Below, piece by piece: positions 9,730-58,325 of a stretch of DNA of 64,000 nucleotides. The DNA is taken from the NCBI RefSeq assembly GCF_032444005.1, contig NC_091284.1, positions 838,736,001 through 838,800,000 of the forward strand, in the 5' to 3' direction. This DNA is from Ranitomeya imitator (taxonomy: Eukaryota). Both the position numbers and the translations under genes were made by a program. Under the pieces are notes generated by a model. That model did no database searches. It saw only the letters and a program-made list of their open reading frames with translations, and was not told the DNA's origin. How positions within the stretch are numbered: position 1 is the first letter of the stretch; every line of letters starts with the position of its first letter.

Positions 9730-10844
9730 GGGGAGCTATAAGTATTCTGGTCTGGAGGAGGAGTTAGAGAGTTGGTCCAGAGAGACCAAGGAGGACAGTT
9801 GGTCAAGGAAGACCAAGGCAGACAGTTGTTGAGAGACAGTGGAGGAGAGAGGAGTGAGAGCAGACAGTGGAGCCGTGCAGCCAAGTGTGAGCTGCAGCTC
9901 CAGGAAAGGAAGATGACCTGAAGGGTTGGAATGTAGTGAGCATCTGAGGAAAGAAGCACAGGAGAGGAAAGGAGCTTAGAGGGAAACTGTGACCGGGCAC
10001 CCTCTGAGCTGAAGTGCAGAAACTGGGCACCGGGAGCCCGAGGCTGTGTTGTGCTCCAGGTCGCACAGCAGAACCGGAGGACAAAGGACTTGTCACCACC
10101 TGTTGCCGGTACCCTGGATTGTGGCTGCTTACAACCAAGTAAACTAAGGACCCCGCTTCACCTGTGAGAAGTGTCACCATCTTGCTGCAGTAACATTATC
10201 CCAGAGGACCCTTTTAAGCAGTGTCGGTCCCCTCTGACAGAGAACCACAGGTGGCGTCACAAATACAAACTTTATTAAACCCTTTAAAGACCTTTCCCCT
10301 TTTACTTGAGCACCCAGAGAGGGAGACAGGGGCGCCCCAGGCCCCAGGAAGGAGAGCCCAGGAACATCCTGGGGGAGACGAGCTCCGGCGAGTCCACGAG
10401 TACCTTCTCCTCCCGAGTGGTCGCCATGCTACGTGAGTACGAGGACGCCGGCAAAGCACTGACCGGGCTGAAGGAGGAGCTGTGGGTGGCTCGGGTCCTG
10501 AACACCCAAGCCTCTAACAAAGAGAAACCCGCGACCTCCCAGAGGTTCAGAGCCCTCAGAGACGAGATGGTCCGGTTAGTGCTCCTCCGGGAGGGGATTG
10601 AGAAAAGCGCAGGTCCCTTCCTGGAGAGGTTTAAGAACCAGCGGCGGTTCTCAGAAATGAAGGGGTTAAATACCTCAGGAGAGCCGCCAGCCGGCGTCCT
10701 AAGCGAGGAGGAGGAGGACGACGTGGCTGTGACTGGAGTCCTACAAGCTGGAACCAGCCGGGAGAGTGAGTCGCAGATCCGACAAGAGGGGAGCGGCCTC
10801 CCGGCACGGCAGAGGACTCCGACAGCACAGGCTGGAGTGTCAGC

Positions 10845-11390
10845 GGAGGAAGAGGAGGAGGGCGGTCTGCTAGAGGAGGAAGAGGAGGAGGGCGGTCTGC
10901 TAGAGGAGGAAGAGGAGGAGGGCGGTCTGCTAGAGGAGGAAGAGGAGGAGGGCGGTGTGCTAGAGGAGGAAGAGGAGGAGGGCGGTCTGCTAGAGGAGGA
11001 AGAGGAGGAGGGCGGTCTGCTAGAGGAGGAGGGCGGTCTGCTAGAGGAGGAAGAGGAGGAGGGCGGTCTGCTAGAGGACTCCGACAGCACAGGCTGGAGT
11101 GTCAGCGGAGGAAGAGGAGGAGGGCGGTCTGCTAGAGGAGGAAGACGAGGAGGGTGGTCTGCTAGAGGAGGAAGAGGAGGAGGGCGGTCTGCTAGTGGAG
11201 GAAGAGGAGGAGGGCGGTCTGCTAGAGGAGGAGGGCGGTCTGCTAGAGGAGGAAGAGGAGCAGGGCGGTCTGCTAGAGGAGGAAGAGGAGGAGGGCGGTC
11301 TGCTAGAGGAGGAAGAGGAGGAGGGCGGTCTGCTAGAGGAGGAAGAGGAGGAGGGCGGTCTGCTAGAGGAGGAGGGCGGTCTGCTAGAGG
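10845..11390 (+). repeat. 30-bp tandem repeat encoding (EEEEEEGGLL)n, in two duplicated blocks
   Basis: GAGGAGGAAGAGGAGGAGGGCGGTCTGCTA units; leader CCGACAGCACAGGCTGGAGTGTCAGCG occurs twice (~10819, ~11081). Confidence 0.9.
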
Positions 11391-12394
11391 AGATCCGACA
11401 GCTGGAGTCTCCAGTGAACCTGGACCGCTTTTCCTTTGGTGAGGACGACCCAGCAGAGGAAACCAAGAAGAGGAAGAAGACGACGAAGGAGACCGCACGG
11501 GAGGTGGTGAGTTACAGATATGTACTGATGGATGATGTTACACCTACCGCCTCCTGTGTAAACCCCACCAAACCTAAAGGCACGGGCTCTGCAGTGGGTC
11601 CGGGGCATAGGCAAGGTGGGGAGAGGAGGAGGACGTCCGGCGGTGCTGCCGTCTGTGCGGGGAACAGTGCAGGGGGCGAGGCTGTGGTGGTACTCACGGC
11701 GCCGGACATAGGGGACCCCGAGGAGTTTCCCTCACTGCCCTCTGCGGCTAAGCCAGTTATCACCGGGGCGGCTGAGGGGGGTGAGGGGGATGTCCACGCT
11801 GTTGCGAAAGGGGGACGATGTGTGCAGACTCCATCCCTGCTCACTACGGCTGAGCCGGCCAACGCCGGGACTGTGGGGGGCAGGTCCGAGAGACTTGGTG
11901 CGGCAAAAGGGGGGCGCACTGTTGTGACAGGGGAGCAGTGCGCCTCAACAGAGAAGAGGCACGCGGCTGCGACAGGGGAGCAGCGAGTCCAAAAAGGACA
12001 AAAAAAGCAGGAAAAATCATCTGCAGGGAACACTGGGCGCCCTGCTGCGACGGGGGGACAGAGTGCTCCAGCGCCCAAACGTGACCACCAGGACCCTGAA
12101 GTCTGTGGGTGCGGGGCAGGCGATTCCCCCCAACAAGCAGCAGGCCCATTATAATAAAATACAAACTGCTGCAGTGGGGGGGCAGGGCGCTCCAGAGACA
12201 CAACACAGCACCAATCAAGGGAAAACGGGTGTGGTGCTGCACCCCTCCCCCGGTCCAGCAGGTGTGAGTGCAGAGAAGCCAGACACAAGTGAGGAAGGAA
12301 TGGATGTGACTGTGGAAGGTGCAGAGAACACTGGGACAAATGGTGGTGACACTACTGGTAATAAAGTGACGGGAAGTGGTGGCAATGGTAAGGG

Positions 12395-13790
12395 GAATGA
12401 TGGGAGTAGTAGTGGAGTGAATGGTGGCAGTAGTGGTGGAGTGAATGATGGGAGTAGTGGTGGAGTGAATGATGGGAGTAGTGGTGGAGTGAATGGTGGG
12501 AGTAGTGGTGGAGTGAATGATGGGAGTAGTGGTGGAGTGAATGGTGGGAGTAGTGGTGGAGTGAATGGTGGGAGTAGTGGTGGAGTGAATGGTGGGAGTA
12601 GTGGTGGAGTGAATGATGGGAGTAGTGGTGGAGTGAATGATGGGAGTAGTTGTGGAATGAATGATGGGAGTAGTGGTAGAGTAAATGGTGGGAGTAGTGG
12701 TGGAGTGAATGATGGGAGTAGTGGTGGAGTGAATGATGGGAGTAGTGGTGGAGTGAATGGAGGGAGTAGTGGTGGAGTGAATGGTGGGAGTAGTGGTGGA
12801 GTGAATGATGGGAGTAGTGGTGGAGTGAATGATGGGAGTAGTGGTGGAGTGAATGATGGGAGTAGTGGTGGAGTGAATGATGGGAGTAGTGGTGGAGTGA
12901 ATGGTGGGAGTAGTGGTGGAGTGAATGGTGGGAGTAGTGGTGGAGTGAATAGTGGGAGTAGTGGTGGAGTGAATGGTGGGAGTAGTGGTGGAGTGAATGG
13001 TGGGAGTAGTGGTGGAGTGAATGGTGGGAGTAGTGGTGGAGTGAATGGTGGGAGTAGTGGTGGAGTGAATGGTGGGAGTAGTGGTGGAGTGAATGGTGGG
13101 AGTAGTGATGGAGTGAATGATGGGAGTAGTGGTGTTGCAAATGATGGGAGTAGTGGTGTTGCAAATGATGGGAGTAGTGGTGGAGTGAATGATGGGAGTA
13201 GTGGTGGAGTGAATGGTGGGAGTAGCGGTGGAGTGAATGGTGGGAGTAGCGGTGGAGTGAATGGTGGGAGTAGCGGTGGAGTGAATGGTGGGAGTAGCGG
13301 TGGAGTGAATGGTGGGAGTAGCGGTGGAGTGAATGGTGGGAGTAGCGGTGGAGTGAATGGTGGGAGTAGCGGTGGAGTGAATGGTGGGAGAAGCGGTGGA
13401 GTGAATGGTGGGAGTAGCGGTGGAGTGAATGGTGGGAGTAGCGGTGGAGTGAATGGTGGGAGTAGCGGTGGAGTGAATGGTGGGAGAAGCGGTGGAGTGA
13501 ATGGTGGGAGTAGCGGTGGAGTGAATGGTGGGAGTAGCGGTGGAGTGAATGGTGGGAGTAGCGGTGGAGTGAATGGTGGGAGTAGCGGTGGAGTGAATGG
13601 TGGGAGTAGCGGTCGAGTGAATGGTGGGAGTAGCGGTGGAGTGAATGGTGGGAGTAGCGGTGGAGTGAATGATGGGAGTAGTGGTGGAGTGAATGATGGG
13701 AGTAGTGGTGGAGTGAATGATGGAAGTAGTGGTGGAGTGAATGATGGGAGTAGTGATGTTGCAAATGATGGGAGTAGTGGTGGAGTGAAT
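12395..13790 (+). repeat. 24-bp tandem repeat (roughly 58 units) encoding (GGVN[G/D]GSS)n in frame with Tx1 ORF1
   Basis: GGTGGAGTGAATGGTGGGAGTAGT units; the ORF 12063-14330 stays open through the array. Confidence 0.95.
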
Positions 13791-15559
13791 GAGGAGAGCA
13801 TTACTGGTGTTGGTGGAGGGGAAGCAGGTAGTGGTCCCGCTGCCCTTCCAGCGGTGGCGGGGGCTTCAGCCCCAAGCTATTCAGGAGCTGTCACTGCTGG
13901 GGGTAGTAGTGCGCCCTTGTCTGGTAACCCTGAGGATGGTGACTTGCAGCAGCGCTTCCTGGACGCCCTGAGGAGAGGGGAGAGTTCCATCAATGTAGAG
14001 GGGAGGGAGGTTGATCTGTCTTTCTGGATAGAGAGACACGGTCTTTCCGCCTTCCGAGATAGAGGGGCAGAGACTGTCTGGTCTCTGCCGACACCGGGGC
14101 AGAGGAGTAACCGTAGGAATGTGGCCCGTCTCCAGCGGGTAAGCAAGGATGCCTGTCCTGATCGGTGGAAGGTTGCTGAGCTCCTGCTGGGGATGGGCTT
14201 CGCGGCATATGACATCTTCGCCTTGATCCATCCCTATGGGACCTCCTACTTCGATGTCAGCTTCGTGAGACCGGAGGGCCTTGAGCTTTTCTGGTCTCGC
14301 CATGAGCTGGCTCGGGGTTGCCCCGAATAGCGGGGTTTCCACGCTGTAGCAATATCCCGCCAGAACTCAGTCAGGAAGTTGACCGTTTTGACCAGTAATG
14401 AGTCACTTTCCTGTGTCGACATCTCCACCTGGGTTGGACGATACGGCGACATCGTTGGTATTCCCGAGAAGACCCTCGATGAGCATGGTATCTGGTCAGG
14501 AGCCTGGACCTTCATGGTGAAATTGAAGGTTTCAGGAAACACTGTTACCCATATCCCTTCCTCAACATTTTTGGGGAGGGACAGGATCTTGATTTTCTAC
14601 CGGGGGCAGCCTAAGGTCTGTCACAGGTGCGGCAGCCCCACACACTTCAGTGCGCAGTGTACCACCCAGAAATGCGCACTGTGTGGGGACCTCGGCCATC
14701 TCGCTGCTACCTGTGGCAGGATTAGGTGTAACCTGTGTGGTGACCTCGATCACCCGTTCAGTCGCTGTCCGCGTTCCTTCGCCAATGCGGTCCTGAAAGC
14801 GGCGAGTGCGGGACAGGCGAAAGCCGGGACTAATCTCGCCGGTGAAGGGACCAGCAGAGGCGGAGGAGGCAGGGAACCGGTGAGGAGCAGGCTGCCGCCA
14901 TCCAATATCAGGCGGCAGGAGCAGCGCCATGGGAACAGGGGGCAGGGAGTAATGACACTAAACTCTGACCCGGGTGCTTCACTTGCAGCTGAGGATCCTA
15001 AAGACAGCGAATTGAGCGAGGAAGTCAAGAGACTTGAAAGGGAGGAGCAAAAGGACGCCATGTCTGCCCAGGAACCTTCATCCGGTGACAGTCTGGATGG
15101 AGAGGGTGAGTGGTCACAGGAAAAGAAAAAGGGTAACAGGAAAACAACTAAGGATAAGAGGGGGTCCGTGCCTCGAGCCTCCTCCTTGGAGTGTGACCCT
15201 GATCCAGGTGCCATTGGAAGGTCTAACCGCCCCCCCCTCTGGTGGATCTGTCCAACCAGTTTCGGGCCTTCCAGGACTCCCCTCCAGAGGGGAACAACGG
15301 GGACCCGGAGCCGGAAGTTGCAGACATGGTTGTTGGGGCTCAGGAGGTCGCTGGGTCTTCTTCTCAGGGGACAACTAAAGGGCCCTCTGGGGGGGACTAC
15401 CTCAGGACCACCAGACAGGGGCCATAGTGTATGTAAGGAGAGAATGGATGAGTCTGTTTGGCTTAAGCGCACTAAAAACTCATCATTGTCGGAGGAAGAG
15501 GGTGAAACTGTTGGTGTGGAAAGACAAAAGCTATCTAATTCAATCAATCATGATGGTGG

Positions 15560-29640: not shown

Positions 29641-30247
29641 CCTGGACCTTCGACACATGAATATGTTACAGCCATCTGAAGATCCCACATCTGTCCTTAG
29701 AGAGCCTCATCTTGCCTCTTCTTCAAGGCTGGCTTTCCCTGACTGTGACTCTAGTGAAGACTGGTGGACCATTGCTGAGACTGAGGAAGGTTCCTCTCCA
29801 TGGATGATGACGTTACTGACACAGAACCATTGCCAGGTCGCAGAGAAGAGGAATCCTAGGCTATGTCCAATCTTTCTGCTGAAGTGGACAAACCTAACGT
29901 TAGTGTTCTCAGTGAAGATCGTCAAGACCTCTGGAGATCTAGCAGGCCTAATACAAGGGCTCAATCAAATAGGTATAACGCTGATCAGTTTGGTCCACCT
30001 GTATGTATTGTAGGCAACGGGCCAATGCTATGTGTAAACAGTTGCATAGAATATTTTATCCTTCTACCTGGACTATACAGCAAGGCTGAGGATGACCAGT
30101 GTGGAGACATGAGGGTCAGTGGGTGCTCTCGTCCTCTGGCCCGGTTGTCTTTAGTAAGGCGAAAAAAAAGTAAAACACTGCACTCATCCAATTCAAATTT
30201 GCTAAAGCGAAAAAGTTTATTGCAGACGTGAAAGCAAAAACAGTGAG

Positions 30248-30304
30248 GCAACAAGTTTAACGTTTCGGCCACTCAGTGGCCTTGTTCACAAATGGTGCTG
30301 TAAC
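30248..30304 (-). ncRNA. Minimal hammerhead ribozyme motif with G3:C8 variant core (left-arm copy)
   Basis: Reverse complement is identical to the 43617-43670 motif. Confidence 0.55.
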
Positions 30305-32200
30305 AAAGAGATAAAAAAAAAACAGTGTATGAACATAACATATACATAGTAATAAAAATATATATACAAGACTATTTACAAGGAAGATATAGGAACTGGA
30401 ACCCATGTCATATCATGTAGAAGGAGGAAAAAGGTTCTAATGATCCTGCAACCAATAGTAAACCCGAAGGGTATAAAGAAAGGAGGTTGGGTTTATAGAG
30501 GATAAGATCTCTACAGGCGGGGGGATCTGGTAAGAGGTTTATAAACATACCCTTAGGAACTGTTTGTGACACGTCATGTAAGAACAAGGATAAAGTAATA
30601 TGTAGTCAGGTAAGGTAGTCCGGCTGTGGCCTATATGGAATGAACACAAGAAGCTGTCGATAAAGAAGTAGATGGTGTAAGCAATCAAAATAAAATAAAA
30701 TAAAAGTGTATAGAGCCATATGAAGTCGGAATGATGTATATATATATATATATGAGAGAGTAATTACCCAAATGGCAGATAAAACTGTCTTATTATTCAA
30801 TGGTCGGAAGCTGTAGTGCAGTCCAGCGATAAATTTGAGACATCTGTCAAAAGGTCAGGTTGGCTGTAATATATATAGTATAGGGATGTATACACTATAC
30901 AAGTTCTAGGATAGACCAGTAAATCAAGTAAATCAGCAAAGTTGCTACCTGGATTGTTACGTTGGCTCCTATGTGGCCCTGCAGACTTGAGGGTTCCAGC
31001 AGAGAGAATAGGGTGAGGCAGGGAATATTAAAATTCCTTCATGCCGTGTCTGTCACCTTAGTAAGGACCTACGTGCCCATAGAGGGTATGAGCAGGGATA
31101 CAAAGCGTCATGTAATGTCTAGAGTCCGACCAGAGGTACTTATCTTAAAATCCGATTATAGTCTCACAGTCATTGGTGGTGCAATGGAGGCGCGGTCCGG
31201 GGTTGCAACGTTCGCAGCTGGAGGTACCGTGGGAAGCGCCGACACAAGCAGTGTCTAGGCGGTGAGAGCGGCGGTAACTGGACTCCAAGGTGTGGAGTTT
31301 TAAAAAGGCCACAGCCGGTCATGTGACCGGAAAGGGAAAAAACCGCCCGCAACTGCGCACTAGCCTAAGCGAGGACTAGGTGACAAGCGCCTGCGTGTGA
31401 GGCTTGTGTAGCCGGCGTCTGCGCGTTGATAGGGAAAACCGGCGCCTGCGCAGAACGTTGTCCTAGAGGGCACAGCGCAAGAGAGGTGTGCACTTGCGCA
31501 TGAGTACTATAGGGGCCGAATATGCCGGGCGCAACAGCACTCAGGAGGAGAGCCACTCTAAGTCCAAAGTGTATCTGGGGAGCCAGGGGCTAGACAAACC
31601 TATGACGATAGAGATAAAATAGGCACTGGTATAGGAGAACTAGGAAGAGAGGAGCGTCCTAGTCCTAATGAAGGACCCCGGCATGTAGTATACCCATAAA
31701 GGCATGAAGTGGTAGTATGTATCTTATGTAGTAGGTATGGTGACATACAGCTAGAGGAAAAACAAAGCAGGAGTATAATAGGATACATAGGAGTGCAATA
31801 TCCTAGTAATAGCAATGTGGGGGAGAAAATAAATTGACATTATAAATAGATATAATATGACATGACGGTAATGTAGTAGGAGTCCAAACTAACAATGATT
31901 ATTCATAAGGAACCCGAGTTGAATAGGTAGGNNNNNNNNNNNNNNNNNNNNNNNNNNNNNNNNNNNNNNNNNNNNNNNNNNNNNNNNNNNNNNNNNNNNN
32001 NNNNNNNNNNNNNNNNNNNNNNNNNNNNNNNNNNNNNNNNNNNNNNNNNNNNNNNNNNNNNNNNNNNNNNNTGAAAATAAGATAAGGGTAAATGAAGCTT
32101 AGGGGGCTCCTAAAGGGTGTGTCTCTTACCATCCCATGGAAATACGATACGAATTCTACATGTGCAGAGGGTTAGTTTGCCTAAGGGAAAGAAAATCCGG

Positions 32201-34171
32201 TTAAGATAGCCAATCTAACTCCCTATTGAGTCCTTTAGGATGAAGTGTGTCAAGCGTGTAAATCCAGAAGGATTCCCTCTGTTTAAGTAACTGGATATGA
32301 TTCCCTCCTCTCCTAGGGCGATGGACTTTTTCAATAACCTGCAAGCGTAATTGTGCTATTGTGTGGTGGGCTTCTTTAAAATGGAATGGTAATGGCAACC
32401 AGGTTTTACCACATCTAATGGTAGATTTGTGGCTTGAGATCCTATTTTTGATGGCCTGGGTGGTCTCACCCACATAGAGCAAACCGCATGGGCACTTAAT
32501 GATATATACCACAAAGTTTGAATTGCAAGTGTGGTATTCTTTGATCGAGAAGGCCTTGCCAGTGCGGGGGTGAAGAAACTCGTTACCTTTTATGACGTTT
32601 GAGCAACACATGCAGCTGAGGCAGGGAAAAGTACCAGTTCTTTTCTGGCCTGAAAGTGTCAAGAGTGATGATGTTTTAGATGTACCCAGATCAGCCCGTA
32701 CCACCTTGTCTTTTACATTCTGGGGTCGTCGCATGCTCATGAGGGGAGGATCCTTGAAAATAGGAATGTTGGGGTATGCTTTGGACAATAGTGGCCAGTG
32801 ACCACGAATCAGGTTATGTATTCTGTGCATGGTAGGGTGGTGGTTATGAACAAATGGAAGTTTAGGGTTCTTGACCATAGTAGGGGCAGTAGCTTCAGTG
32901 TTAAGGGCTTTGGAGGATTCCAAATCGAGAAGTTTGGTCGGGTAATTCCGGGCCTTAAATTTATTGGACATTTCCTGAACTCTATTGTTCCTAGTCACTG
33001 GGTCGGAGACAATTCTGGCTACCCTTTTGAATTGGGACCTAGGGAGGCTATCCCGGGTAGGTTTGGGGTGACAACTATTATAGAGTAACAGGCTGTTACA
33101 GTCAGTAGGTTTCACAAATAGGTCCGTACTCAAATTCCCAGATGCGTCTTTCATGATTTTAGTATCAAGAAAGGCAATTTCCTTGTTGTGGTGTACCAAT
33201 GTGAAAGTCAGCTCTGGTCTAACTTCGTTTATAGTTCTAAAGAACTCTTGTAGAGTGGTCTGATCACCTTTCCATATACAGAAAATGTCATCTATATACC
33301 TGTACCATGTAAGGGCATGTTGTTGAAACATAGAGTTGGGGTAAATATGTGTGCGCTCAAAGTGATCCATATACAAGTTCGCATATGCCGGGGCCACATT
33401 TGACCCCATGGCAGTACCGCATGTTTGTAAAAAGAAGTCATCTTCAAACATGAAGAAGTTCTCCCTAAGGACAAGATTCAGCAGGTCAAGGCACAGGTCT
33501 AGTAGGTTCGGATCCATATTGGCCTCACGAAGAGTCAGCGTTACTGCCTCAATACCCTTGTCGTGTTCAATGGAGGTGTACAGACTATTCACGTCTAAAG
33601 TACACAAAGTACTGTCTGGAGGAATGTTATTAATACTGCGAATTTTGTTCAGGAAGTCACCTGTGTCTAGAATGTAGGATTTGGTAGAGCGAGCATGGGG
33701 GGTGAGAATTTTTTCTAGAAAAATGGACAATAGATTCAATATTGAGTTAGTAGATGCCACTATAGGGCGACCAGGGGGATTGTGGAGATCCTTGTGGATT
33801 TTGGGTAGGATATATAGTACCGGGGTCACAGGATGGTGGTTTATGAGGTATGTTCTGGTTTTCGCATCTATAGTTTTGAGTTGTTGGTGTTTATCTAGGA
33901 CAGAGGTAATCTTCTGACATATGTTGTAGGTGGGGTCAGTTTGTAATTTCCTATATGTGGAGGGATCCGAGAGTTGGCGTCTAACTTCCGCAGTGTACTG
34001 GTTTCTATTCATAACAACTGTGGCACCCCCCTTATCCGCCGGCTTAATAATAATGTTTTTATTCCTACTCAGTGAACCCAAGGCCTGTCTCTCAGAGGTA
34101 TTCAGGTTGTGTTGAACTGGGAGAAGACCCAGGTGTTGATCATGAAGAGTACTTTTAATGTCTCTGTCCAA
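32201..34171 (-). CDS. PLE reverse transcriptase + GIY-YIG endonuclease (probably Neptune-type); N-terminal part continues frameshifted to ~34483
   Basis: GTAMGS..APAYANLYMD, WYRYIDD, Cys-rich linker CLSCMCC, VVYIIKCPCGLLYVGET; upstream frame has LKVLNMGLSFCP. Confidence 0.9.
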   Translation of the reverse strand: MDRDIKSTLHDQHLGLLPVQHNLNTSERQALGSLSRNKNIIIKPADKGGATVVMNRNQYTAEVRRQLSDPSTYRKLQTDPTYNICQKITSVLDKHQQLKTIDAKTRTYLINHHPVTPVLYILPKIHKDLHNPPGRPIVASTNSILNLLSIFLEKILTPHARSTKSYILDTGDFLNKIRSINNIPPDSTLCTLDVNSLYTSIEHDKGIEAVTLTLREANMDPNLLDLCLDLLNLVLRENFFMFEDDFFLQTCGTAMGSNVAPAYANLYMDHFERTHIYPNSMFQQHALTWYRYIDDIFCIWKGDQTTLQEFFRTINEVRPELTFTLVHHNKEIAFLDTKIMKDASGNLSTDLFVKPTDCNSLLLYNSCHPKPTRDSLPRSQFKRVARIVSDPVTRNNRVQEMSNKFKARNYPTKLLDLESSKALNTEATAPTMVKNPKLPFVHNHHPTMHRIHNLIRGHWPLLSKAYPNIPIFKDPPLMSMRRPQNVKDKVVRADLGTSKTSSLLTLSGQKRTGTFPCLSCMCCSNVIKGNEFLHPRTGKAFSIKEYHTCNSNFVVYIIKCPCGLLYVGETTQAIKNRISSHKSTIRCGKTWLPLPFHFKEAHHTIAQLRLQVIEKVHRPRRGGNHIQLLKQRESFWIYTLDTLHPKGLNRELDWLS

Positions 34172-34503
34172 GTGAAAGTTTCTGCTGCATGATATGATTT
34201 GGGTGGCATGAATGTACTGGGGTTCCTGAGTCCTAAAGAATTGATGCTGATTTTGGGTATGTCCGGGTTAGGTGCGGCATCTGTGGTGTTATCCCTACTA
34301 GGAGGGTTGGCCTCAAAATGTACCTTCAATCTTATGCTTCTATAGAAGCGTTGAAGGTCTTTTTCTAGCTGAAAAGAGTCCCACCTTGGTGTGGGACAAA
34401 AAGACAAACCCATATTGAGAACCTTCAACTCTAGGGGGGACAGAGAATAATCAGATATATTGATTACCGAGTTTGGACTCCTACCAGAATTGTCTCCGAC
34501 CCA

Positions 34504-35301
34504 GTGACTAGGAACAATAGAGTTCAGGAAATGTCCAATAAATTTAAGGCCCGGAATTACCCGACCAAACTTCTTGATTTGGAATCCTCCAAAGCCCTTA
34601 ACACTGAAGCTACTGCCCCTACTATGGTCAAGAACCCTAGACTTCCGTTTGTTCATAACCACCACCCTACCATGCACAGAATACATAACCTGATTCGTGG
34701 TCACTGGTCACTATTGTCCAAAGCATACCCCAACATTCCTATTTTCAAGGATCCTCCCCTCATTAGCATGCGACGACCCCAGAATGTAAAAGACAAGGTG
34801 GTACGGGCTGATCTGGGTACATCTAAAACATCATCACTCTTGACACTTTCAGGCCAGAAAAGAACTGGTACTTTTCCCTGCCTCAGCTGCATGTGTTGCT
34901 CAAACGTCATAAAAGGTAACGAGTTTCTTCACCCCCGCACTGGCAAGGCCTTCTCGATCAAAGAATACCACACTTGCAATTCAAACTTTGTGGTATATAT
35001 CATTAAGTGCCCATGCGGTTTGCTCTATGTGGGTGAGACCACCCAAGCCATCAAAAATAGGATCTCAAGCCACAAATCTACCATTAGATGTGGTAAAACC
35101 TGGTTGCCATTACCATTCCATTTTAAAGAAGCCCACCACACAATAGCACAATTACGCTTCCAGGTTATTGAGAAAGTCCATCGCCCTAGGAGAGGAGGGA
35201 ATCATATCCAGTTACTTAAACAGAGGGAATCCTTCTGGATTTACACGCTTGACACACTTCATCCTAAAGGACTCAATAGGGAGTTAGATTGGCTATCTTA
35301 A
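34504..35301 (+). pseudogene. Duplicated C-terminal PLE ORF fragment (thumb/linker/GIY-YIG)
   Basis: Matches the last 265 aa of the 32201-34171 ORF except 4 residues (K/R, P/S, M/I, L/F). Confidence 0.85.
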
Positions 35302-36755
35302 CCGGATTTTCTTTCCCTTAGGCAAACTAACCCTCTGCACATGTAGAATTCGTATCGTATTTCCATGGGATGGTAAGAGACACACCCTTTAGGAGCCCCC
35401 TAAGCTTCATTTACCCTTATCTTATTTTCAATTTCCNNNNNNNNNNNNNNNNNNNNNNNNNNNNNNNNNNNNNNNNNNNNNNNNNNNNNNNNNNNNNNNN
35501 NNNNNNNNNNNNNNNNNNNNNNNNNNNNNNNNNNNNNNNNNNNNNNNNNNNNNNNNNNNNNNNNNNNNNNNNNNNNNNNNNNTTCCTACCTATTCAACTC
35601 TGGTTCCTTATGAATAATCATTGTTAGTTTGGACTCCTACTACATTACCGTCATGTCATATTATATCTATTTATAATGTCAATTTATTTTCTCCCCCACA
35701 TTGCTATTACTAGGATATTGCACTCCTATGTATCCTATTATACTCCTGCTTTGTTTTTCCTCTAGCTGTATGTCACCATACCTACTACATAAGATACATA
35801 CTACCACTTCATGCCTTTATGGGTATACTACATGCCGGGGTCCTTCATTAGGACTAGGACGCTCCTCTCTTCCTAGTTCTCCTATACCAGTGCCTATTTT
35901 ATCTCTATCGTCATAGGTTTGTCTAGCCCCTGGCTCCCCAGATACACTTTGGACTTAGAGTGGCTCTCCTCCTGAGTGCTGTTGCGCCCGGCATATTCGG
36001 CCCCTATAGTACTCATGCGCAAGTGCACACCTCTCTTGCGCTGTGCCCTCTAGGACAACGTTCTGCGCAGGCGCCGGTTTTCCCTATCAACGCGCAGACG
36101 CCGGCTACACAAGCCTCACACGCAGGCGCTTGTCACCTAGTCCTCGCTTAGGCTAGTGCGCAGTTGCGGGCGGTTTTTTCCCTTTCCGGTCACATGACCG
36201 GCTGTGGCCTTTTTAAAACTCCACACCTTGGAGTCCAGTTACCGCCGCTCTCACCGCCTAGACACTGCTTGTGTCGGCGCTTCCCACGGTACCTCCAGCT
36301 GCGAACGTTGCAACCCCGGACCGCGCCTCCATTGCACCACCAATGACTGTGAGACTATAATCGGATTTTAAGATAAGTACCTCTGGTCGGACTCTAGACA
36401 TTACATGACGCTTTGTATCCCTGCTCATACCCTCTATGGGCACGTAGGTCCTTACTAAGGTGACAGACACGGCATGAAGGAATTTTAATATTCCCTGCCT
36501 CACCCTATTCTCTCTGCTGGAACCCTCAAGTCTGCAGGGCCACATAGGAGCCAACGTAACAATCCAGGTAGCAACTTTGCTGATTTACTTGATTTACTGG
36601 TCTATCCTAGAACTTGTATAGTGTATACATCCCTATACTATATATATTACAGCCAACCTGACCTTTTGACAGATGTCTCAAATTTATCGCTGGACTGCAC
36701 TACAGCTTCCGACCATTGAATAATAAGACAGTTTTATCTGCCATTTGGGTAATTA

Positions 36756-36805
<50 letters not shown>

Positions 36806-37173
36806 TACAGTGGGGCAAAAAAGTATTTAGTCAGTCAGCAATAGTGCAAGTTCCACCACTTAAAAAGATGAGAGGCGTCTGTAATTTACATCATAGGTAG
36901 ACCTCAACTATGGGAGACAAACTGAGAAAAAAAAATCCAGAAAATCACATTGTCTGTTTTTTATCATTTTTTTTGCATATAATGGTGGAAAATAAGTATT
37001 TGGTCAGAAACAAACAATCAAGATTTCTGGCTCTCACAGACCTGTAACTTCTTCTTTAAGAGTCTCCTCTTTCCTCCACTCATTACCTGTAGTAATGGCA
37101 CCTGTTTAAACTTGTTATCAGTATAAAAAGACACCTGTGCACACCCTCAAACAGTCTGACTCCAAACTCCACT

Positions 37174-38196
37174 ATGGTGAAGACCAAAGAGCTGTCAAAG
37201 GACACCAGAAACAAAATTGTAGCCCTGCACCAGGATGGGAAGACTGAATCTGCAATAGCCAACCAGCTTGGAGTGAATAAATCAACAGTGGGAGCAATAA
37301 TTAGAAAATGGAAGACATACAAGACCACTGATAATCTCCCTCGATCTGGGGCTCCACGCAAAATCCCACCCCGTGGGGTCAGAATGATCACAAGAACGGT
37401 GAGCAAAAATCCCAGAACCACGCGGGGGGACCTAGTGAGTGAACTGCAGAGAGCTGGGACCAATGTAACAAGGCCTACCATAAGTAACACACTACGCCAC
37501 CATGGACTCAGATCCTGCAGTGCCAGACGTGTCCCACTGCTTAAGCCAGTACATGTCCGGGCCCGTCTGAAGTTTGCTAGAGAGCATTTGGATGATCCAG
37601 AGGAGTTTTGGGAGAATGTCCTATGGTCTGATGAAACCAAACTGGAACGGTTTGGTAGAAACACAACTTGTCGTGTTTGGAGGAAAAAGAATACTGAGTT
37701 GCATCCATCAAACACCATACCTACTGTAAAGCATGGTGGTGGAAACATCATGCTTTGGGGCTGTTTCTCTGCAAAGGGGCCAGGATGACTGATCCGGGTA
37801 CATGAAAGAATGAATGGGGTCATGTATCGTGAGATTTTGAGTGCAAACCTCCTTCCATCAGCAAGGGCATTGAAGATGAAACGTGGCTGGGTCTTTCAAC
37901 ATGACAATGATCCAAAGCACACCGTCACGGCAACGAAGGAGTGGCTTCGTAAGAAGCATTTCAAGGTCCTGGAGTGGCCTAGCCAGTCTCCAGATCTCAA
38001 CCCTATAGAAAACCTTTGGAGGGAGTTGAAAGTCCGTGTTGCCAAGCGAAAAGCCAAAAACATCACTGCTCTAGAGGAGATCTGCATGGAGGAATGGGCC
38101 AACATACCAACAACAGTGTGTGGCAACCTTGTGAAGACTTACAGAAAACGTTTGACCTCTGTCATTGCCAACAAAGGATATATTACAAAGTATTGA
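37174..38196 (+). pseudogene. Tc1 DD34E transposase (340 codons) with a single internal TGA
   Basis: ORFs 37174-37788 and 37810-38196 are in frame; [23 protein letters not shown] with 34 residues between D and E; TGA at 37786-37788 is probably CGA. Confidence 0.9.
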
Positions 38197-40097
38197 GATG
38201 AAATTTTGTTTCTGACCAAATACTTATTTTCCACCATAATATGCAAATAAAATGATAAAAAAGCAGACAATGTGATTTTCTGGATTTTTTTTCTCAGTTT
38301 GTCTCCCATAGTTGAGGTCTACCTATGATGTAAATTACAGACGCCTCTCATCTTTTTAACCCCTTTCTGCCATCAGACGTACTATTGCGTCCATGGGGGG
38401 TGGGCCCTACTTCCCAAGGACGCAATAGTACGTCATATGCGATCGGCAGCGCTCACGGGGGGAGCGGCGCCGATCGCGGCCGGGTGTCAGCTGCCTATCG
38501 CAGCTGACATCCGGCACTATGTGCCAGGAGCGGTCACGGACCGCCCCCGGCACATTAACCCCCGGCACACCGCGATCAAAGATGATCGCGATGTGCCGGC
38601 GGTGCAGGGAAGCACCGCGCAGGGAGGGGGGCTCCCTGCGGGCTTCCCTGAGACCCCCGCAGCAACGCGATGTAATCGCGTTGCTGCGAGGGTCTTGCCG
38701 CCCTCCCTCCCTGCTCCAGGTCCCGGATCCAAGATGGCCGCGGATCCGGGTCCTGCAGGGAGGGAGGTGGCTTCACAGAGCCTGCTCAGAGCAGGCACTG
38801 TGAAGCCTGCACTGCTGCATGTCAGATCAGTGATCTGACAGAGTGCTGTGCAAACTGTCAGATCACTGATCTGTGATGTCCCCCCCTGGGACAAAGTAAA
38901 AAAGTAAAAAAAAAATTTTCCAAATGTGTAAAAAAAATTAAAAAAAAATATTCCTAAATAATGAAAAAAAAAAAAAAATATTCCCATAAATACATTTCTT
39001 CATCTAAATAAAAAAAAAAAAAAACAATAAAAGTACACATATTTAGTATCGCCGCGTCCGTATCGACTCGCCCTATAAAACTGGCACACTAGTTAACCCC
39101 TTCAGTAAACACCGTAAGAAAAAAAAAAAAAAAAACGAGGCAAAAAACGACACTTTATTATCATACCGCCGAACAAAAAGTGGAATAACACGTGATCAAA
39201 AAGACAGATATAAACAACCATGGTACCGCTGAAAGCGTCATCTTGTCCCGCAAAAAACGAGCCACCATACAGCATCATCAGCAAAAAAATGAAAAAGTTA
39301 TAGTCCTGAGAATAAAGCGATGCCAAAATAATTATTTTTTCTATAAAATAGTTTTTATCGTATAAAAGCGCCAAAACATAAAAAAATGATATAAATGAGA
39401 TGTCGCTGTAATCATACTGACCCGAAGAATAAAACTGCTTTATCAATTTTACCAAACGCGGAACGGTATAAACGCCTCCCCCAAAAGAAATTCATGAATA
39501 GCTGGTTTTTGGTCATTCTGTCTCACAAAAATCGGAATAAAAAGCGATCAAAAAATGTCACGTGCCCGAAAATGTTACCAATAAAAACGTCAACTCGTCG
39601 CGTAAAAAACAAGACCTCACATGACTGTGTGGACCAAAATATGGAAAAATTATAGCTCTCAAAATGTGGTAACGCAAAAAATATTTTTTGCAATAAAAAG
39701 CGTCTTTCAGTGTGTGACGGCTGCCAATCATAAAAATCCGCTAAAAAACCCGCTATAAAAGTAAATCAAACCCCCCTTCATCACCCCCTTAGTTAGGGAA
39801 AAATAAAAAAATGTATTTATTTCCATTTTNNNNNNNNNNNNNNNNNNNNNNNNNNNNNNNNNNNNNNNNNNNNNNNNNNNNNNNNNNNNNNNNNNNNNNN
39901 NNNNNNNNNNNNNNNNNNNNNNNNNNNNNNNNNNNNNNNNNNNNNNNNNNNNNNNNNNNNNNNNNNNNNNNNNNNNNNNNNNNNNNNNNNNNNNNNNNNN
40001 NNNNNNNNNNNNNNNNNNNNNNNNNNNNNNNNNNNNNNNNNNNNNNNNNNNNNNNNNNNNNNNNNNNNNNNNNNNNNNNNNNNNNNNNNNNNNNNNN

Positions 40098-40260
40098 TTA
40101 GGGTTGGGGCTAAAGTTACAGTTAGGGTTTAGATTACATTTACAGTTGGGAATAGGGTTGGGATTAGGGTTAGGGGTGTGTCAGGGTTAGAGGTGTGGTT
40201 AGGGTTACCGTTGGAATTAGGGTTAGGGGAGTGTTTGGATTAGGGTTTCAGTTATAATTG
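40098..40260 (+). repeat. Degenerate (TTAGGG)n-like tract inside the piggyBac-like element
   Basis: Repeated TTAGGG/TTAGGGG variants directly after an N gap. Confidence 0.7.
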
Positions 40261-42480
40261 GGGGGTTTCCACTGTTTAGGCACATCAGGGGCTCTCCAAA
40301 AGCGACATGGCGTCCGATCTCAATTCCAGCCAATTCTGCGTTGAAAAAGTAAAACAGTGCTTCTTTCCTTCCGAGCTCACCCGTGTGCCCAAACAGGGGT
40401 TTACCCCAACATATGGGGTATCAGCGTACTCAGGACAAATAGGACAACAACTGTTGGGGTCCAATTTCTCCTGTTACCCTTGGGAAAATACAAAACTGGG
40501 GGCTAAAAAATAATTTTTGTGGGAAAAAAAAGATTTTTTATTTTTACGGCTCTGCGTTATAAACTGTAGTGAAACACTTGGGGTTCAAAGTTCTCACAAC
40601 ACATCTAGATAAGTTCCCGGGGGGGTCTAGTTTCCAATATGGGGTCACTTGTGGGGGGTTTCTACTGTTTAGGTACATTAGGGGCTCTGCAAACGCAATG
40701 TGACGCCTGCAGACCATTCCATCTAAGTCTGCATTCAAATGGCACTCCTTCCCTTCCGAGCCCTCCCATGCGCCCAAACAGTGGTTTCCCCCCACATATG
40801 GGGTATCAGCGCACTCAGGACAAATTGGACAACACATTTTTGGGTCCAATTTCTCCTGTTACCCTCGGGAAAATACAAAACTGGGGGCTAAAAAATAATT
40901 TTTGTGGGAAAAAAATTTTGTTTTATTTTTACGGCTCTCCATTATAAACCTCTGTGAAGCCCTTGGTGGGTCAAAGCGCTCACCACACATCTAGATAAGT
41001 TCCTTAGGGGGTCTACTTTCCAAAATGGTGTCACTTGTGGGGGGTTTCTACTGTTTAGGTACATTAGGGGCTCTGCAAACGCAATGTGACGCCTGCAGAC
41101 CATTCCATCTAAGTCTGCATTCAAATGGCACTCCTTCCCTTCCGAGCCCTCCCATGCGCCCAAACAGTGGTTTCCCCCCACATATGGGGTATCAGCGCAC
41201 TCAGGACAAATTGGACAACACATTTTTGGGTCCAATTTCTCATGTTACCCTCGGGAAAATACAAAACTGGGGGCTAAAAAATAATTTTTGTGGGAAAAAA
41301 TTTTTGTTTTATTTTTACGGCTCTCCATTATAAACCTCTGTGAAGCCCTTGGTGGGTCAAAGCGCTCACCACACATCTAGATAAGTTCCTTAGGGGGTCT
41401 ACTTTCCAAAATGGTGTCACTTGTGAGTGGTTTCTACTATTTAGGTACATTAGGGGCTCTGCAAACGCAACATGGCGTCTCATCTCAATTCCTGTTAATT
41501 TTGCATTGAAAAGTCAAACGGCGCTCCTTCCTTTCCGAGCTCTCCCATCCGCCCAAACAGTGGTTTACCCCCACATATGGGGTATCAGCGCACTCAGGAC
41601 AAATTGTACAACAACTATTGGGGTCCAATTTCTTCTCTTACCCTTGGAAAAATAAAAAATTGGGGGCGAAAAGATAATTTTTGTGAAAAAATATGATTTT
41701 TTTATTTTTACGGTTCTGCATTATAAACTTCTGTGAAGCACTGGGTGGGTCAAAGTGCTCACCACACCTCTAGATAAGTTCCTTAGGGGGTCTACTTTCC
41801 AAAATGGTGTCACTTGTGGGGGGTTTCAATGTTTAGGCACATCAGTGGCTTTCCAAACGCAACATGGCATCCCATCTCAATTCCTGTCAATTTTGCATTG
41901 AAAAGTCAAACGGCGCTCCTTCCCTTCCGAGCTCTCCCATCCGCCCAAACAGTGGTTTACCCCCACATATGGGATATCAGCTTACTCAGGACAAATTGTA
42001 CAACAACTATTGGGGTCCAATTTCTTCTCTTACCCTTGGAAAAATAAAAAATTGGGGGCGAAAAGATAATTTGTGTGAAAAAATATGATTTTTTATTTTT
42101 ACGGTTCTACATTATAAACTTCTGTGAAGCACTTGGTGGGTGAAAGAGCTCACCACACCTCTATATAAGTTCCTTAGGGGGTCTACTTTCCAAAATGGTG
42201 TCACTTGTGGGGGGTTTCAATGTTTAGGCACATCAGGGGCTCTCCAAACGAAACATGGTGTCCCATCTCAATTCCTGTCAATTTTGCATTGAAAAGTCAA
42301 ATGGCGCTCCTTCGCTTCCGAGCTGTGCCATGCGCCCAAACAGTGGTTTACCCCCACATGTGGGGTATTGGCGTACTCAGGACAAATTGTACAACAATGA
42401 TTGCAGTCCATTTTCTCCTGTTACCCTTGGTAAAATAAAACAAATTGGAGCTGAATTAAATTTTTTGTGAAAAAAAGTTA
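40260..42480. repeat. ~390-bp tandem repeat, about 5-6 diverged units
   Basis: GGGTCTACTTTCCAAAATGGTGTCACTTGTG recurs at ~386-391-bp spacing; duplicated ORFs 40639/41025 and 41814/42205. Confidence 0.9.
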
Positions 42481-43137
42481 AATGTTCATTTTTATTTAAA
42501 CATTCAAAAAATTCCTGTGAAGCACCAGAAGGGTTAATAAACTTCTTGAATGTGGTTTTAAGCACCTTGAGGGGTGTAGTTTTTAGAATGGTGTCACACT
42601 TGGGTATTTTCTATCATATAGACCCCTCAAAATGACTTCAAATGAGATGTGGTCCCTAAAAAAAAAAATGGTGTTGTAGAAATGAGAAATTGCTGGTCAA
42701 ATTTTCACCCTTATAACTCCCTAAGAAAAAAAAATTTTGGTTCCAAAATTGTGCTGATGTAAAGTAGACATGTGGGAAATGTTACTTATTAAGTATTTTG
42801 TGTGACATATATCTGTGATTTAATTGCATAAAAATTCAAAGTTGGAAAATTGCGAAATTTTCATAATTTTCGCCAAATTTCCGTTTTTTTCACAAATAAA
42901 CGCAGGTACTATCAAAGAATTTTTACCATTGTCATGAAGTACAATATGTCACGAGAAAACAATGTCAGATTCACTGGGATCCGTTGAAGCGTTCCAGAGT
43001 TATAACCTCATAAAGGGACAGTGGTCAGAATTGTAAAAATTGGCCCGGTCATTAACGTGCAAACCACCCTTGGGGGTAAAGGGGTTAAGTGGTGGAACTT
43101 GCACTATTGCTGACTGACTAAATACTTTTTTGCCCCA

Positions 43138-43188
<51 letters not shown>

Positions 43189-43616
43189 TCCGACTTCATA
43201 TGGCTCTATACACTTTTATTTTATTTTATTTTGATTGCTTACACCATCTACTTCTTTATCGACAGCTTCTTGTGTTCATTCCATATAGGCCACAGCCGGA
43301 CTACCTTACCTGACTACATATTACTTTATCCTTGTTCTTACATGACGTGTCACAAACAGTTCCTAAGGGTATGTTTATAAACCTCTTACCAGATCCCCCC
43401 GCCTGTAGAGATCTTATCCTCTATAAACCCAACCTCCTTTCTTTATACCCTTCGGGTTTACTATTGGTTGCAGGATCATTAGAACCTTTTTCCTCCTTCT
43501 ACATGATATGACATGGGTTCCAGTTCCTATATCTTCCTTGTAAATAGTCTTGTATATATAGTTTTATTACTATGTATATGTTATGTTCATACACTGTTTT
43601 TTTTTATCTCTTTGTT

Positions 43617-43670
43617 ACAGCACCATTTGTGAACAAGGCCACTGAGTGGCCGAAACGTTAAACTTGTTGC
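43617..43670 (+). ncRNA. Minimal hammerhead ribozyme motif with G3:C8 variant core (right-arm copy)
   Basis: TTT-GTGAACA-A-GGCCAC-tga-GTGGCC-GAAAC-GTT-AAA; same layout as the canonical motif at 57495. Confidence 0.55.
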
Positions 43671-44099
43671 CTCACTGTTTTTGCCTTCACGTCTGCAATA
43701 AACTTTTTCACTTTAGAAAATTTGAACTTGATGAGTGCAGTGTTTTACTTTTTCTCCAGTAATTGAGGGTCTTTGGATCCCGTGCACTAGCACCATCGAG
43801 AAACTCTACCTATTTGTCGAGTGCTAGCTCTTTATCCTTTCAAGTCTTTGGTAAGGCTGCATGGACCAGGGCTCATCCCACTCAATGCCCGCACTCCTTC
43901 CACGTGGGCATAATACTATAATATAAGGTGAGGGTAAAACAGTTAATGTTTACTTTATCACTCATCACTGATTTAATTAAACTGTACTAATCCCAACTGC
44001 CATCTCAGGTGACCAAGACAAGATGGTAACCCTGGAAAAAGCACACAAATAAATGAGTTTCATATACAGTTGTACCTGCTGCTTTTCATTATCCATAGC

Positions 44100-55621: not shown

Positions 55622-57267
55622 TAGAAGGTTTCTTCTGAGTAATGTCGGATGCTGCACCTTCAGATGAAACAATGAATTTAGGGACATGGAGAGTATGTGA
55701 TATGAACATCGTGTGGCTCTTCTACTGAGTGACTAAGAACAGTTGCCAGATACGAGCTGATCATAAACCAATCATACGTGGAGACACAACATGCTCCTGA
55801 AGCGCCGCTGGACAATGCCTGTCATTGTTGGCGATCTTCTGCTGACAATACTTGCTTGGAGTAGTGGTTGTGCAGAGGCCGGAGATGCAGCCTGGCAGTA
55901 AATGCATTTCAGCTCTAGTAAATGTCTCTTGTCCATTCCTCACATTATTTCAGACCCTTTCCTGTCATGATGGAAATCCATGTCTTTAATTATTTACCTC
56001 TTGTCACCTTCAGTGTCCACGTGACGCACAGCTGCTTTCATGAAATATAGATGGACATCCACTTAGATGAGTCAGGGGCAGCGCGTGGTACAACAAGTCC
56101 ATGTGCTCGGCCTGGGTGACACAAACACCAGAGCTATGGATGGATGCCCATCTACTGTGGTAGTATAAATGGTCCATAGAAGATGGGGGTCAATGATACT
56201 GTATGCTTCTAATGGCCATCCATATGTGTGCCCCCCATCTATACCCTCTGGATTGTCCGCAGCCATGCTACAGCTTCTTCAGGGCGTGGACAACAGCAGC
56301 CGTAAACTATCCATGTCCTTATACTAAGGCTTTGGACCTAGCTGCTGGATCTGTGGGGATTACATGGAAGCAGAGAGTAGTGGTAAGTGGTGTAGCAGGA
56401 TGGTTGACTCAGGGCTTCAATTTCAATGGGGGTGAAAAATTTTGCTCGTACCCCAATTCTTCTTCTTCTTCTTGGAGTGACACATGGGTGGTACAGACAG
56501 GGCCTGGAAGGGGCTGCAGGAGTCAACATGGGTTTGTAATCATCTGCTGCGCTCTGCGTATGCAAAGAAGAAAGCTGTAGTGTAGACGGTTAGGGTTAGT
56601 GATAGTGTTAGGGCTAGAACAAGGTTTAGAGAAGGGTTAAGGATAATGGGCTAGGGCTGCGGTAGAGCTAGGACAAAGTTTAGAGTTATGATTAGGGTTA
56701 AAGATAGTGATAGGGTTTGGACTAGGTTAAAGGATATTAATAGGGTTGGGGCTAGGGTTGAGGATAGAGATAGGGTTAGGGCTAGGACAAGGTTTAGAGT
56801 TAGGATTAGGGGTAAAGATAGTGATAGGGATAGGACAAGGTTTAGAGTTAGGATTAGGGGTAAAGATAGTGATAGTGATAGGGTTAGGACTAAAACAAGG
56901 TGTAGAGTTAGGATTAGGGTTAAAGATAGTGATAGGGTTTGGACTAGGGTAAAGGATAGTGATAGGGTTAGGGCTAGGACAAGGTTTAGAGTTAGGATTA
57001 GGGGTAAAGATAGTGATAGGACAAGGTTTAGAATTAGGACTAGGATTAAAGATAGTGATAGTGTTAGGGCTAGGGTTAAGGATAGTGATAGGGTTAGGAC
57101 TAAAACAAGGTGTAGAGTTTGGACTAGAGTTAAGGATAGTGATAGGGTTAGGTCAAGGTTTAGAGTTAGGATTAGGGGTAAAGATAGTGATCTGGTTAGG
57201 GATAGGACAAGGTTTAGAATTAAGCACTCAACTTAAGTATATTTTGCAGCAAGGTTTATTGTAGCAT

Positions 57268-57320
57268 GGACAATAAGACGTTTCAGTCTGTGGTGACCTT
57301 CATCAGTTACATAATGTTCA
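57268..57320 (-). ncRNA. Second hammerhead copy (stem II GACC>GACT)
   Basis: Reverse complement of the 57481 motif with one C>T at a CpG (57285). Confidence 0.6.
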
Positions 57321-57480
57321 ATAGCAGACGTTGACCGAAGATAAGACGCGGAGTCCACCGCTCGTCCACTGCTCCAGGTACTACCATCATTCACTCTCCT
57401 ATAGCGCTCTGCATTGCGCTAGAAGTCTTTCACTTGCCTCATATATACGGCACCACTTATCTTCGGTCAACGTTTGCTAT

Positions 57481-57534
57481 TGAACATTATGTAACTGATG
57501 AAGGTCACCACAGACCGAAACGTCTTATTGTCCA
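57481..57534 (+). ncRNA. Canonical minimal hammerhead ribozyme motif
   Basis: TAA-CTGATGA-A-GGTC-accaca-GACC-GAAAC-GTC-TTA; predicted cleavage after 57524. Confidence 0.75.
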
Positions 57535-58325
57535 TACTACAATAAACCTTGCTGCAAAATATACTTAAGTTGAGTGCTGGGTTTACTATCTTGCATCTAT
57601 ATGGTTTGGGAACCTAACCCTAGCACCTCCCTTTATTTCGTAGTTGGGCTCACGCTGTCTTTTCTATAAGGTTTAGAGTTAGGACTAGGGTTAAAGATAG
57701 TGATAGTGTTAGGGCTAAAACAAGGTGTAGACTTAGGACTAGGGTTAAAGATAGTGATAGGGTTAGGACTAGGGTTAAAGATAGTGATAGTGTTAGGACT
57801 AAAACATGGTGTAGAGTTAGGACTAGGGTTAAGGATAGCAATAGGGTTAGGGCTAGGACAAAATTTAGCCCTAGGGTTAAAGGTAGGTTTAGGGTTAGTT
57901 TTACATATAGCATAATAAAATATTAACATAAAAAGTAATAATAAATAAAGTCTAAAAATGTATTACAATGTACTGTATAACTTTATTTTTATTTTTTTTT
58001 AATTGTATGTCAGATTTCAGCAAAAATCAGAAAATAACTGTATGATCAATGGGAAAACTTTAATTACATCAGTATTTTCTTAAAATACATGATCTTGGCG
58101 GATACAAAGTTTAATACTGGACTGGTGGAAGGGACTCAGGTACTGTAGTGCTGACAGTCCATGGATTTGGGGCGTAAAATGCTGATCTTGCCCCAGCGCT
58201 GACAACGCGTGCTACGCCACCGGCGGTGGTCATGCTTTATTGAGCAGAAAGACAAGACAGCACACAGGAGAAAGGCAGGCATTATTGGTTGTTGGCATTC
58301 CATGGCGGGTAGAAGGCAGGAAATA

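Follow-up and report, generated by a model that had tools for sequence, protein, structure and literature searches.

The 64-kb stretch of Ranitomeya imitator DNA analysed here (the window) carries, once in each of two inverted Penelope-like element (PLE) copies, a motif supported as a Penelope-type minimal hammerhead with a G3:C8 core, since context, orientation, architecture and positional homology all agree; it is a real, rare natural variant of a known ribozyme. The C3-G8 pair is a key prediction of the active hammerhead structure, and to our knowledge the 3:8 pair has so far been known to vary in nature to U3-A8 only. In the literature we found engineered examples of G3:C8 and no natural one, in a search whose scope excludes the 2017 work of Lunse, Weinberg and Breaker, reportedly the largest PLE-hammerhead survey with about 150,000 PLE hammerheads, so an earlier description is possible. 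We put at roughly 60% the probability that the motif is the hammerhead of a young PLE family, minimal in form, dimer-acting, G3:C8 in its core and still cutting. Its identity as a hammerhead descendant is supported by the motif itself, its place and strand, its positional homology and the constraint on 3:8 pairing, all documented below, and beyond that we infer cleavage, dependence on a dimer and retention of the swap by selection.

Architecturally, the motif is compact (Table 1). Its 31-nt sequence occurs, exactly, twice in the window, at 43629-43659 (+) and 30259-30289 (-), and was never matched in 100 shuffles, the chance expectation being none. Compared with the first conserved box of hammerheads (C3 U4 G5 A6 N7 G8 A9), U4, G5, A6 and A9 are kept and positions 3 and 8 are changed, a departure from the strict consensus, and the second box (G12 A13 A14 A15.1, U16.1, H17) is present as GAAA, U and U17. 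Helix II, at 6 bp with G-C at its base, falls within the expected 4-8 bp closed by G10.1-C11.1; loop 3 is absent, and 15.2-16.2 are palindromic as ACGU, as in minimal hammerheads. The nine other invariant core nucleotides are all intact, as are the G10.1-C11.1 pair, helix II with its perfect pairing and the ACGU palindrome. According to Cervera and De la Pena 2014 (PMC4209133), PLE minimal hammerheads are marked by an unpaired nucleotide between A9 and G10.1, by the conserved G10.1-C11.1 pair and by palindromy of 15.2-16.2; their helix II is long and their helix I short, the latter having a closing stem and a loop that is poorly defined. The candidate carries every one of these hallmarks. It further resembles the metazoan representatives of that class in its location (PLE terminal repeat or 3' tail), in its sense orientation and in having no loop 3, with dimer action expected; it differs in reading GUGAACA where theirs read CUGANGA, that is, in having G3/C8 for C3/G8 (PMC4209133).

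The original prediction had read the motif letter by letter exactly as it stands in the sequence, which also bears out its claims that the core departs from CUGANGA at positions 3 and 8 alone while remaining Watson-Crick as G3:C8, that stem II is a perfect 6 bp, and that CUGANGA searches would miss the motif, the core box being GUGAACA. The identical copy that it placed at 30248-30304 is indeed exact, although inverted: it reads as the reverse complement and occupies 30259-30289 of the minus strand. An alternative register without the extra A (UGAACAA against CUGANGA) mismatches at five positions and was rejected. In the minimum-free-energy fold, helix II, the UUU/AAA pairing, an internal loop and a closing stem are all present; its z-score is not significant, as expected for so small a motif. 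The same fold pairs G3 with U17 as a wobble, a competing and inactive alternative. In this class helix I is typically about 3-6 bp, and an internal loop with a closing stem is frequent; here it comprises three A-U pairs by the core plus the predicted 5-bp closing stem, at the weak end of the 2-8 bp seen in natural motifs.

Table 1 Coordinates, in the window, of the hammerhead motifs, their parts and the surrounding elements.
Feature	Position	Strand	Details
Minimal hammerhead motif, right PLE copy	43626..43662	+	from sequence and descriptor
Helix I, 5' strand UUU	43626-43628	+	pairs with AAA 43660-43662
Core box 1, GUGAACA	43629-43635	+	G3-U4-G5-A6-A7-C8-A9
Single unpaired A	43636	+	between A9 and G10.1
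Helix II, GGCCAC/GUGGCC	43637-43642 and 43646-43651	+	6 perfect bp; loop UGA (hairpin 43637-43651)
GAAA	43652-43655	+	G12-A15.1
C15.2 G16.2	43656-43657	+	U16.1 at 43658; U17 at 43659
Predicted cut, right copy	43659/43660	+	GUU^A
Predicted helix I extension	43618..43669	+	internal loop and 5-bp closing stem; 43618-43622 pair with 43665-43669
Inverted identical motif, left PLE copy	30256..30292	-	core and helices from 30289 down to 30259
Predicted cut, left copy	between 30259 and 30258	-	
Left PLE copy, 5'-truncated	30165..34483	-	ORF 32201-34171: RT, CxxCxCC linker, GIY-YIG
Right PLE copy, inner part, more 5'-truncated	34484..36863	+	ORF remnant 34504-35301 with GIY-YIG
Right PLE copy, outer part	43085..43758	+	hammerhead and 3' end (...GTTTTAC T5 CTCCA)
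Conserved CAATAAAC box, right PLE copy tail	43695-43703	+	
Later insertion, ~6.2 kb, in the (TA)n tract of the right arm	36864..43084	.	not PLE
Tc1/Sleeping-Beauty-like transposon within the insertion	36860-38359		HTH and DDE_3 domains; 75-nt and 58-nt inverted ends
Rest of the insertion, ~4.7 kb	38360-43084		
Canonical minimal hammerhead	57495..57524	+	CUGAUGA, unpaired A, 4-bp helix II, GAAACGUC
Partner hammerhead of 57495-57524	57277-57306	-	

Structurally, the locus is, judged from its sequence, two head-to-head, 5'-truncated Penelope-like elements, joined at 34483/34484 with their 3' ends outward; in a base-by-base alignment the left arm of the inverted structure covers 30165-33018, and unique sequence follows to 34483. 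Pfam identifies RVT_1 and GIY-YIG in the element, with a Cys-rich CxxCxCC linker ahead of the GIY-YIG block, and the nearest proteins are uncharacterised PLE-type sequences of Ranitomeya and Dendrobates at 73-87% identity; full-length relatives have ~838 aa. The element is an EN+ PLE with a C-terminal GIY-YIG, Neptune-like in a clade assignment made from the linker rather than from a tree. In the left copy a non-coding tail of ~1.9 kb follows the ORF and ends ~94 nt beyond the hammerhead, and in each copy the motif lies on the ORF strand (sense), ~94 nt upstream of the 3' end. PLE hammerheads lie in such a 3'-end position, and inverted 5'-truncated pairs are common for PLEs (PMC8557442). The motif had been said to be present in both PLE arms, and each arm of the RT and GIY-YIG element does contain a sense-strand copy.

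The two copies do not have separate histories. More than 100 contigs of other runs follow the left flank as far as 30158 and then run on into window sequence from 43849, and because the flanks are continuous in these other copies of the flanking repeat, the whole 13.6 kb represents one insertion event; by the same comparison, the continuous flanks indicate a single insertion into a high-copy repeat. With the arms coming from one insertion, identical motifs are not independent evidence against decay, and the argument that identical copies exclude local decay does not cover decay before insertion. Both outer flanks of the PLE pair, 30109-30158 and 43762-43848, start with TGAGGGTC and end with GTCTTTRGTAAGG, a duplication that would be either a long imperfect target duplication or two adjoining repeat units. 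Aligned with each other, the arms mismatch at 15 positions, eight of them in the 690-nt ORF part and one in the next ~1,970 nt. Five mismatches fall within 45 nt, 26-70 nt downstream of the predicted cut (30189-30233 / 43685-43729), and at two of these five it is the right arm, not the left, that agrees with the contigs of other runs; different templates, local hypermutation and gene conversion of the inner arms are candidate explanations for the cluster. Elsewhere in the window, some 150 units of 23 nt form a long tandem array with strongly negative GC skew from 24010 to about 27800, and the region 10000-14000 is GC-rich (0.55-0.61) with an extreme positive GC skew of up to 0.70.

A canonical comparator lies in the same window. 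A small inverted-repeat element without coding sequence occupies 57223-57578, among degenerate TTAGGG-like repeats, and contains two canonical motifs (helix II GGUC/GACC); it is probably a retrozyme-like non-autonomous relative. Downstream of the hammerhead, the tails of the small element and of the PLE have in common a TGAGTGC..GTTTAC end and the CAATAAAC box, whose order is the same and whose spacing is similar in the two, and a local alignment score as high as theirs came up in 1/1000 shuffles; the candidate thus occupies the position that a canonical hammerhead holds in a related tail. The two motifs are alike in the unpaired A, GAAACGU and the homologous downstream tail, whereas the comparator has C3/G8, U7, C17 and a 4-bp helix II and lacks an ORF. 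In the core, the comparator's C3 is G in the candidate, its G8 is C, and its U7, at a position that is free to vary, is A. The CAATAAAC box contains AATAAA and lies at 43695-43703 and 57538-57546, ~35 nt past the hammerhead in the PLE and ~14 nt past it in the small element; it could possibly be a polyadenylation signal or a protein-recognition site.

Evolutionarily, the pairing of positions 3 and 8 can be followed across unrelated PLEs. Our sample comprised 82 PLE loci, 80 of them on metagenome contigs and 2 on MAG contigs, collected with a profile of frog, salamander and other PLE proteins, and both strands of the loci were searched (379 kb for the antisense scan) with a free-core descriptor derived from the minimal hammerhead of Cervera and De la Pena. 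This descriptor leaves positions 3, 7 and 8 unconstrained, and requires NUGANNA, 0-1 extra nucleotide, a helix II of at least 4 bp closed by G-C, GAAA, complementary 15.2-16.2, a U followed by any base other than G, and a helix I of at least 3 bp. A strict run on the 80 loci gave 35 sense matches (3:8 being C:G in 25 and U:A in 10) and 0 antisense matches; a relaxed run gave 41 sense matches, which are 31 distinct sequences (20 C:G, 9 U:A, 1 C.A and 1 U:C), and 1 antisense match. The two MAG loci contributed two further C:G motifs. Adding these to the relaxed set and removing the C.A and U:C matches leaves 31 distinct good sense motifs from the 82 loci, 22 with C:G and 9 with U:A, so that 3:8 is paired in 31/31; G:C at 3:8 occurs in none of them. 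The C.A motif (L057:1734-1765) is a diverged copy at a metagenomic locus, beside U3:A8 copies of the same hammerhead family, and is a possible natural intermediate between U:A and C:G, and the U:C match, which sits inside an ORF and resembles the lone antisense noise match, is likely due to chance. In metagenome and viral collections, scans for the exact motif with N at 3, 7 and 8 returned nothing, and a PLE protein scan of viral contigs likewise found nothing.

The candidate sits comfortably among these natural motifs, every measured feature lying inside their ranges save the identity of the 3:8 pair. An unpaired nucleotide follows A9 in 30/31, helix II spans 4-7 bp and helix I 2-8 bp (n=31), and the commonest base at N7 is A (13/31). 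Stem III had been described as a short self-complementary ACGT typical of PLE hammerheads, a description in keeping with the dinucleotide helix III design of 27/31 motifs. U17 is the commonest base at the cleavage site (17/31); the idea that U17 in the candidate is an adaptation against a G3-C17 mispair, suggested by PMC3884650, was dropped, U17 being commonest in canonical PLE motifs too. The 3:8 pairing in PLE hammerheads is under constraint, and the candidate obeys that constraint: natural motifs show covariation of positions 3 and 8, with G:C as the third and rare combination. If two random substitutions fell among the 11 conserved core positions, they would land on 3 and 8 and restore a pair with a probability of (1/55) x (3/9), ~0.6% by our own calculation.

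Natural exchange at this pair has a precedent in U3-A8, a covariation published by Perreault et al. 2011 (PMC3088659) and found in the Cercyon PLEs of Schistosoma (PMC4209133). Like the candidate, these variants keep a Watson-Crick pair at 3:8 in PLE hammerheads; unlike it, they can be reached from C:G by wobble (through U.G, or C.A as in L057), whereas G:C lies two transversions away through unpaired states. Engineered C3G/G8C doubles, attributed to Martick and Scott 2006 as cited in PMC11167929 and to Przybilski and Hammann 2007 as cited in PMC3088659, have the same G3:C8 core, with the single mutants dead and the double partly active. The case nearest to ours is the hammerhead of the Anolis Poseidon PLE (PAc), in which C3G and G8C each abolish cleavage and the double partly restores it (PMC11167929); it too is a PLE hammerhead, and it requires the element's protein. 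For another construct, a G3-C8 core gave higher activity if position 17 was G than if it was C, a difference that the authors attribute to a competing pair with position 17 (PMC3884650). All of these doubles are laboratory constructs in canonical backgrounds, whereas the candidate's family is natural and has U17 and a helix I of 3 bp.

Mechanistically, we posit that in a sense transcript the 6-bp helix II hairpin and the short helix I would form, the motif having no helix III of its own, and that helix III would arise by pairing of the palindromic ACGU of two motif copies, either in tandem or as a pLTR in one RNA, or in two RNAs. The resulting double hammerhead would cut after U17 (GUU^A; 43659/43660 and 30259/30258), with G3-C8 standing in for the canonical tertiary pair, C3-G8. 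The active hammerhead pairs C3 with G8 and uses G12 as general base and the 2'-OH of nucleotide 8 as general acid (Martick and Scott 2006, as cited in PMC11167929), and both catalytic residues are retained here. As the swap leaves nucleotide 8 in place, the ribozyme would probably still be active and cut, only more slowly, and probably with help from the element's protein. Cleavage by the candidate is plausible by analogy with engineered C3G/G8C doubles, which partly cut, that of the Anolis PLE hammerhead included. The present locus, with its truncated and oppositely directed copies, cannot give a transcript with two sense motifs, and any function belongs to source copies of the family rather than to this insertion.

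The main rival to a G3:C8 hammerhead that still cuts, and a serious alternative to which we give a substantial minority share of the probability, is a true PLE hammerhead descendant that no longer cleaves or whose cleavage has become irrelevant. Such a motif might survive as an RNA fold that serves a different purpose, for instance by binding the RT/EN protein or by flagging the 3' region at which reverse transcription initiates internally, or it might just be young, with too little time for decay; under this reading G:C would either belong to the fold or be fortuitous. The alternative is serious because PLE insertion depends only weakly on cleavage: catalytic mutants of the Anolis element insert normally in vitro, no RNA-seq ends were seen at its hammerhead cut site (PMC11167929), and Naiad and Chlamys PLEs without hammerheads proliferate (PMC8557442). 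From the normal insertion of hammerhead-dead mutants and the success of hammerhead-less clades, selection for cleavage in PLEs may be weak. Such weak dependence would make the unpaired intermediate between C:G and G:C tolerable, and two transversions with no wobble intermediate are easier to accept if cleavage is dispensable. In vitro, PLE minimal hammerheads are poor cutters even when their core is canonical (PMC4209133), a low activity that fits this alternative, as do the very weak helix I and the predicted G3.U17 pair of the candidate. Against it stand the intact remainder of the core, from the nine invariant nucleotides and G10.1-C11.1 to helix II and the ACGU palindrome, and the fact that the sole two core changes are ones that restore a pair, at the ~0.6% calculated above for random substitution. 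The pairing held at 3:8 in 31/31 distinct natural PLE motifs and the cutting of the engineered G3:C8 double mutant (PMC11167929) argue in the same direction.

A chance resemblance, in which a GC-rich palindromic hairpin merely happens to lie beside GAAAC, is strongly disfavoured and in our estimation very improbable. Rfam hammerhead models, at the gathering score and at E<=10, found no match to the candidate, which would suit such a coincidence, as would the non-significant folding z-score; however, the same models missed the canonical motif at 57495, so the Rfam negative carries no weight. Applied to the 64-kb window, the free-core descriptor matched the two candidate copies and the canonical motif at 57495 and nothing else, and it gave 0 matches on 300 dinucleotide-preserving shuffles and 0 (strict run) on the antisense of the 379 kb of PLE loci. 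The motif moreover lies in the place and on the strand expected for a PLE hammerhead, in positional homology to a canonical one.

Beyond this locus, the family is abundant. About 1,700 contigs per run, under one organism label (a related or the same organism), match the left copy at at least 80%, most of them being less than 95% alike, and summed contig depth is about 900-2,500 in the hammerhead zone (30191-30313) and about 150-450 in the neighbouring tail. Across 30209-30460, motif included, there was no fixed difference among the variants listed (40 of ~1,300), and an exact 31-mer from somewhere within 43614-43676 (two 31-mers were sampled) is present in DNA runs of four organism labels and in RNA-derived contigs. 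An assembly or sequencing artefact, whether homogenised arms or an error that made the G and the C, is barely credible: long stretches of the arms are 100% identical, as palindrome collapse in polishing would produce, but 15 positions distinguish the arms, and five of these follow closely on the motif. Independent runs moreover have contigs spanning the motif, and the 40 variants listed of ~1,300 include no fixed difference there; an exact 31-mer from the motif region also recurs in many runs. In some contigs the match is confined to about 30258-30291, with dissimilar flanks. Others, at 30259-30298, appear to have two hammerhead segments head to tail with CTTAC between them, at a 45-nt period, a close spacing that would favour a double hammerhead.

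Since CUGANGA searches and Rfam models miss motifs of this kind, censuses of PLE hammerheads undercount them. We regard as rather unlikely, if possible, the larger proposition that this is the first natural G3:C8 hammerhead family, that it belongs to the currently most active dendrobatid PLE lineage and that it is still catalytically competent. If true, it would mean that a ribozyme can, in nature, carry one of its tertiary pairs across a fitness valley of two transversions, a crossing perhaps allowed by the weak need for cleavage in PLE transposition, with pairing later restored by selection. A natural, multi-copy G3:C8 family would constitute a third independent state of the 3:8 pair and would confirm the structural model on evolutionary evidence alone. 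Such a family would also offer natural tests of two questions, namely how much the base identity of nucleotide 8 matters relative to its ribose, and how far PLEs rely on hammerhead cleavage.
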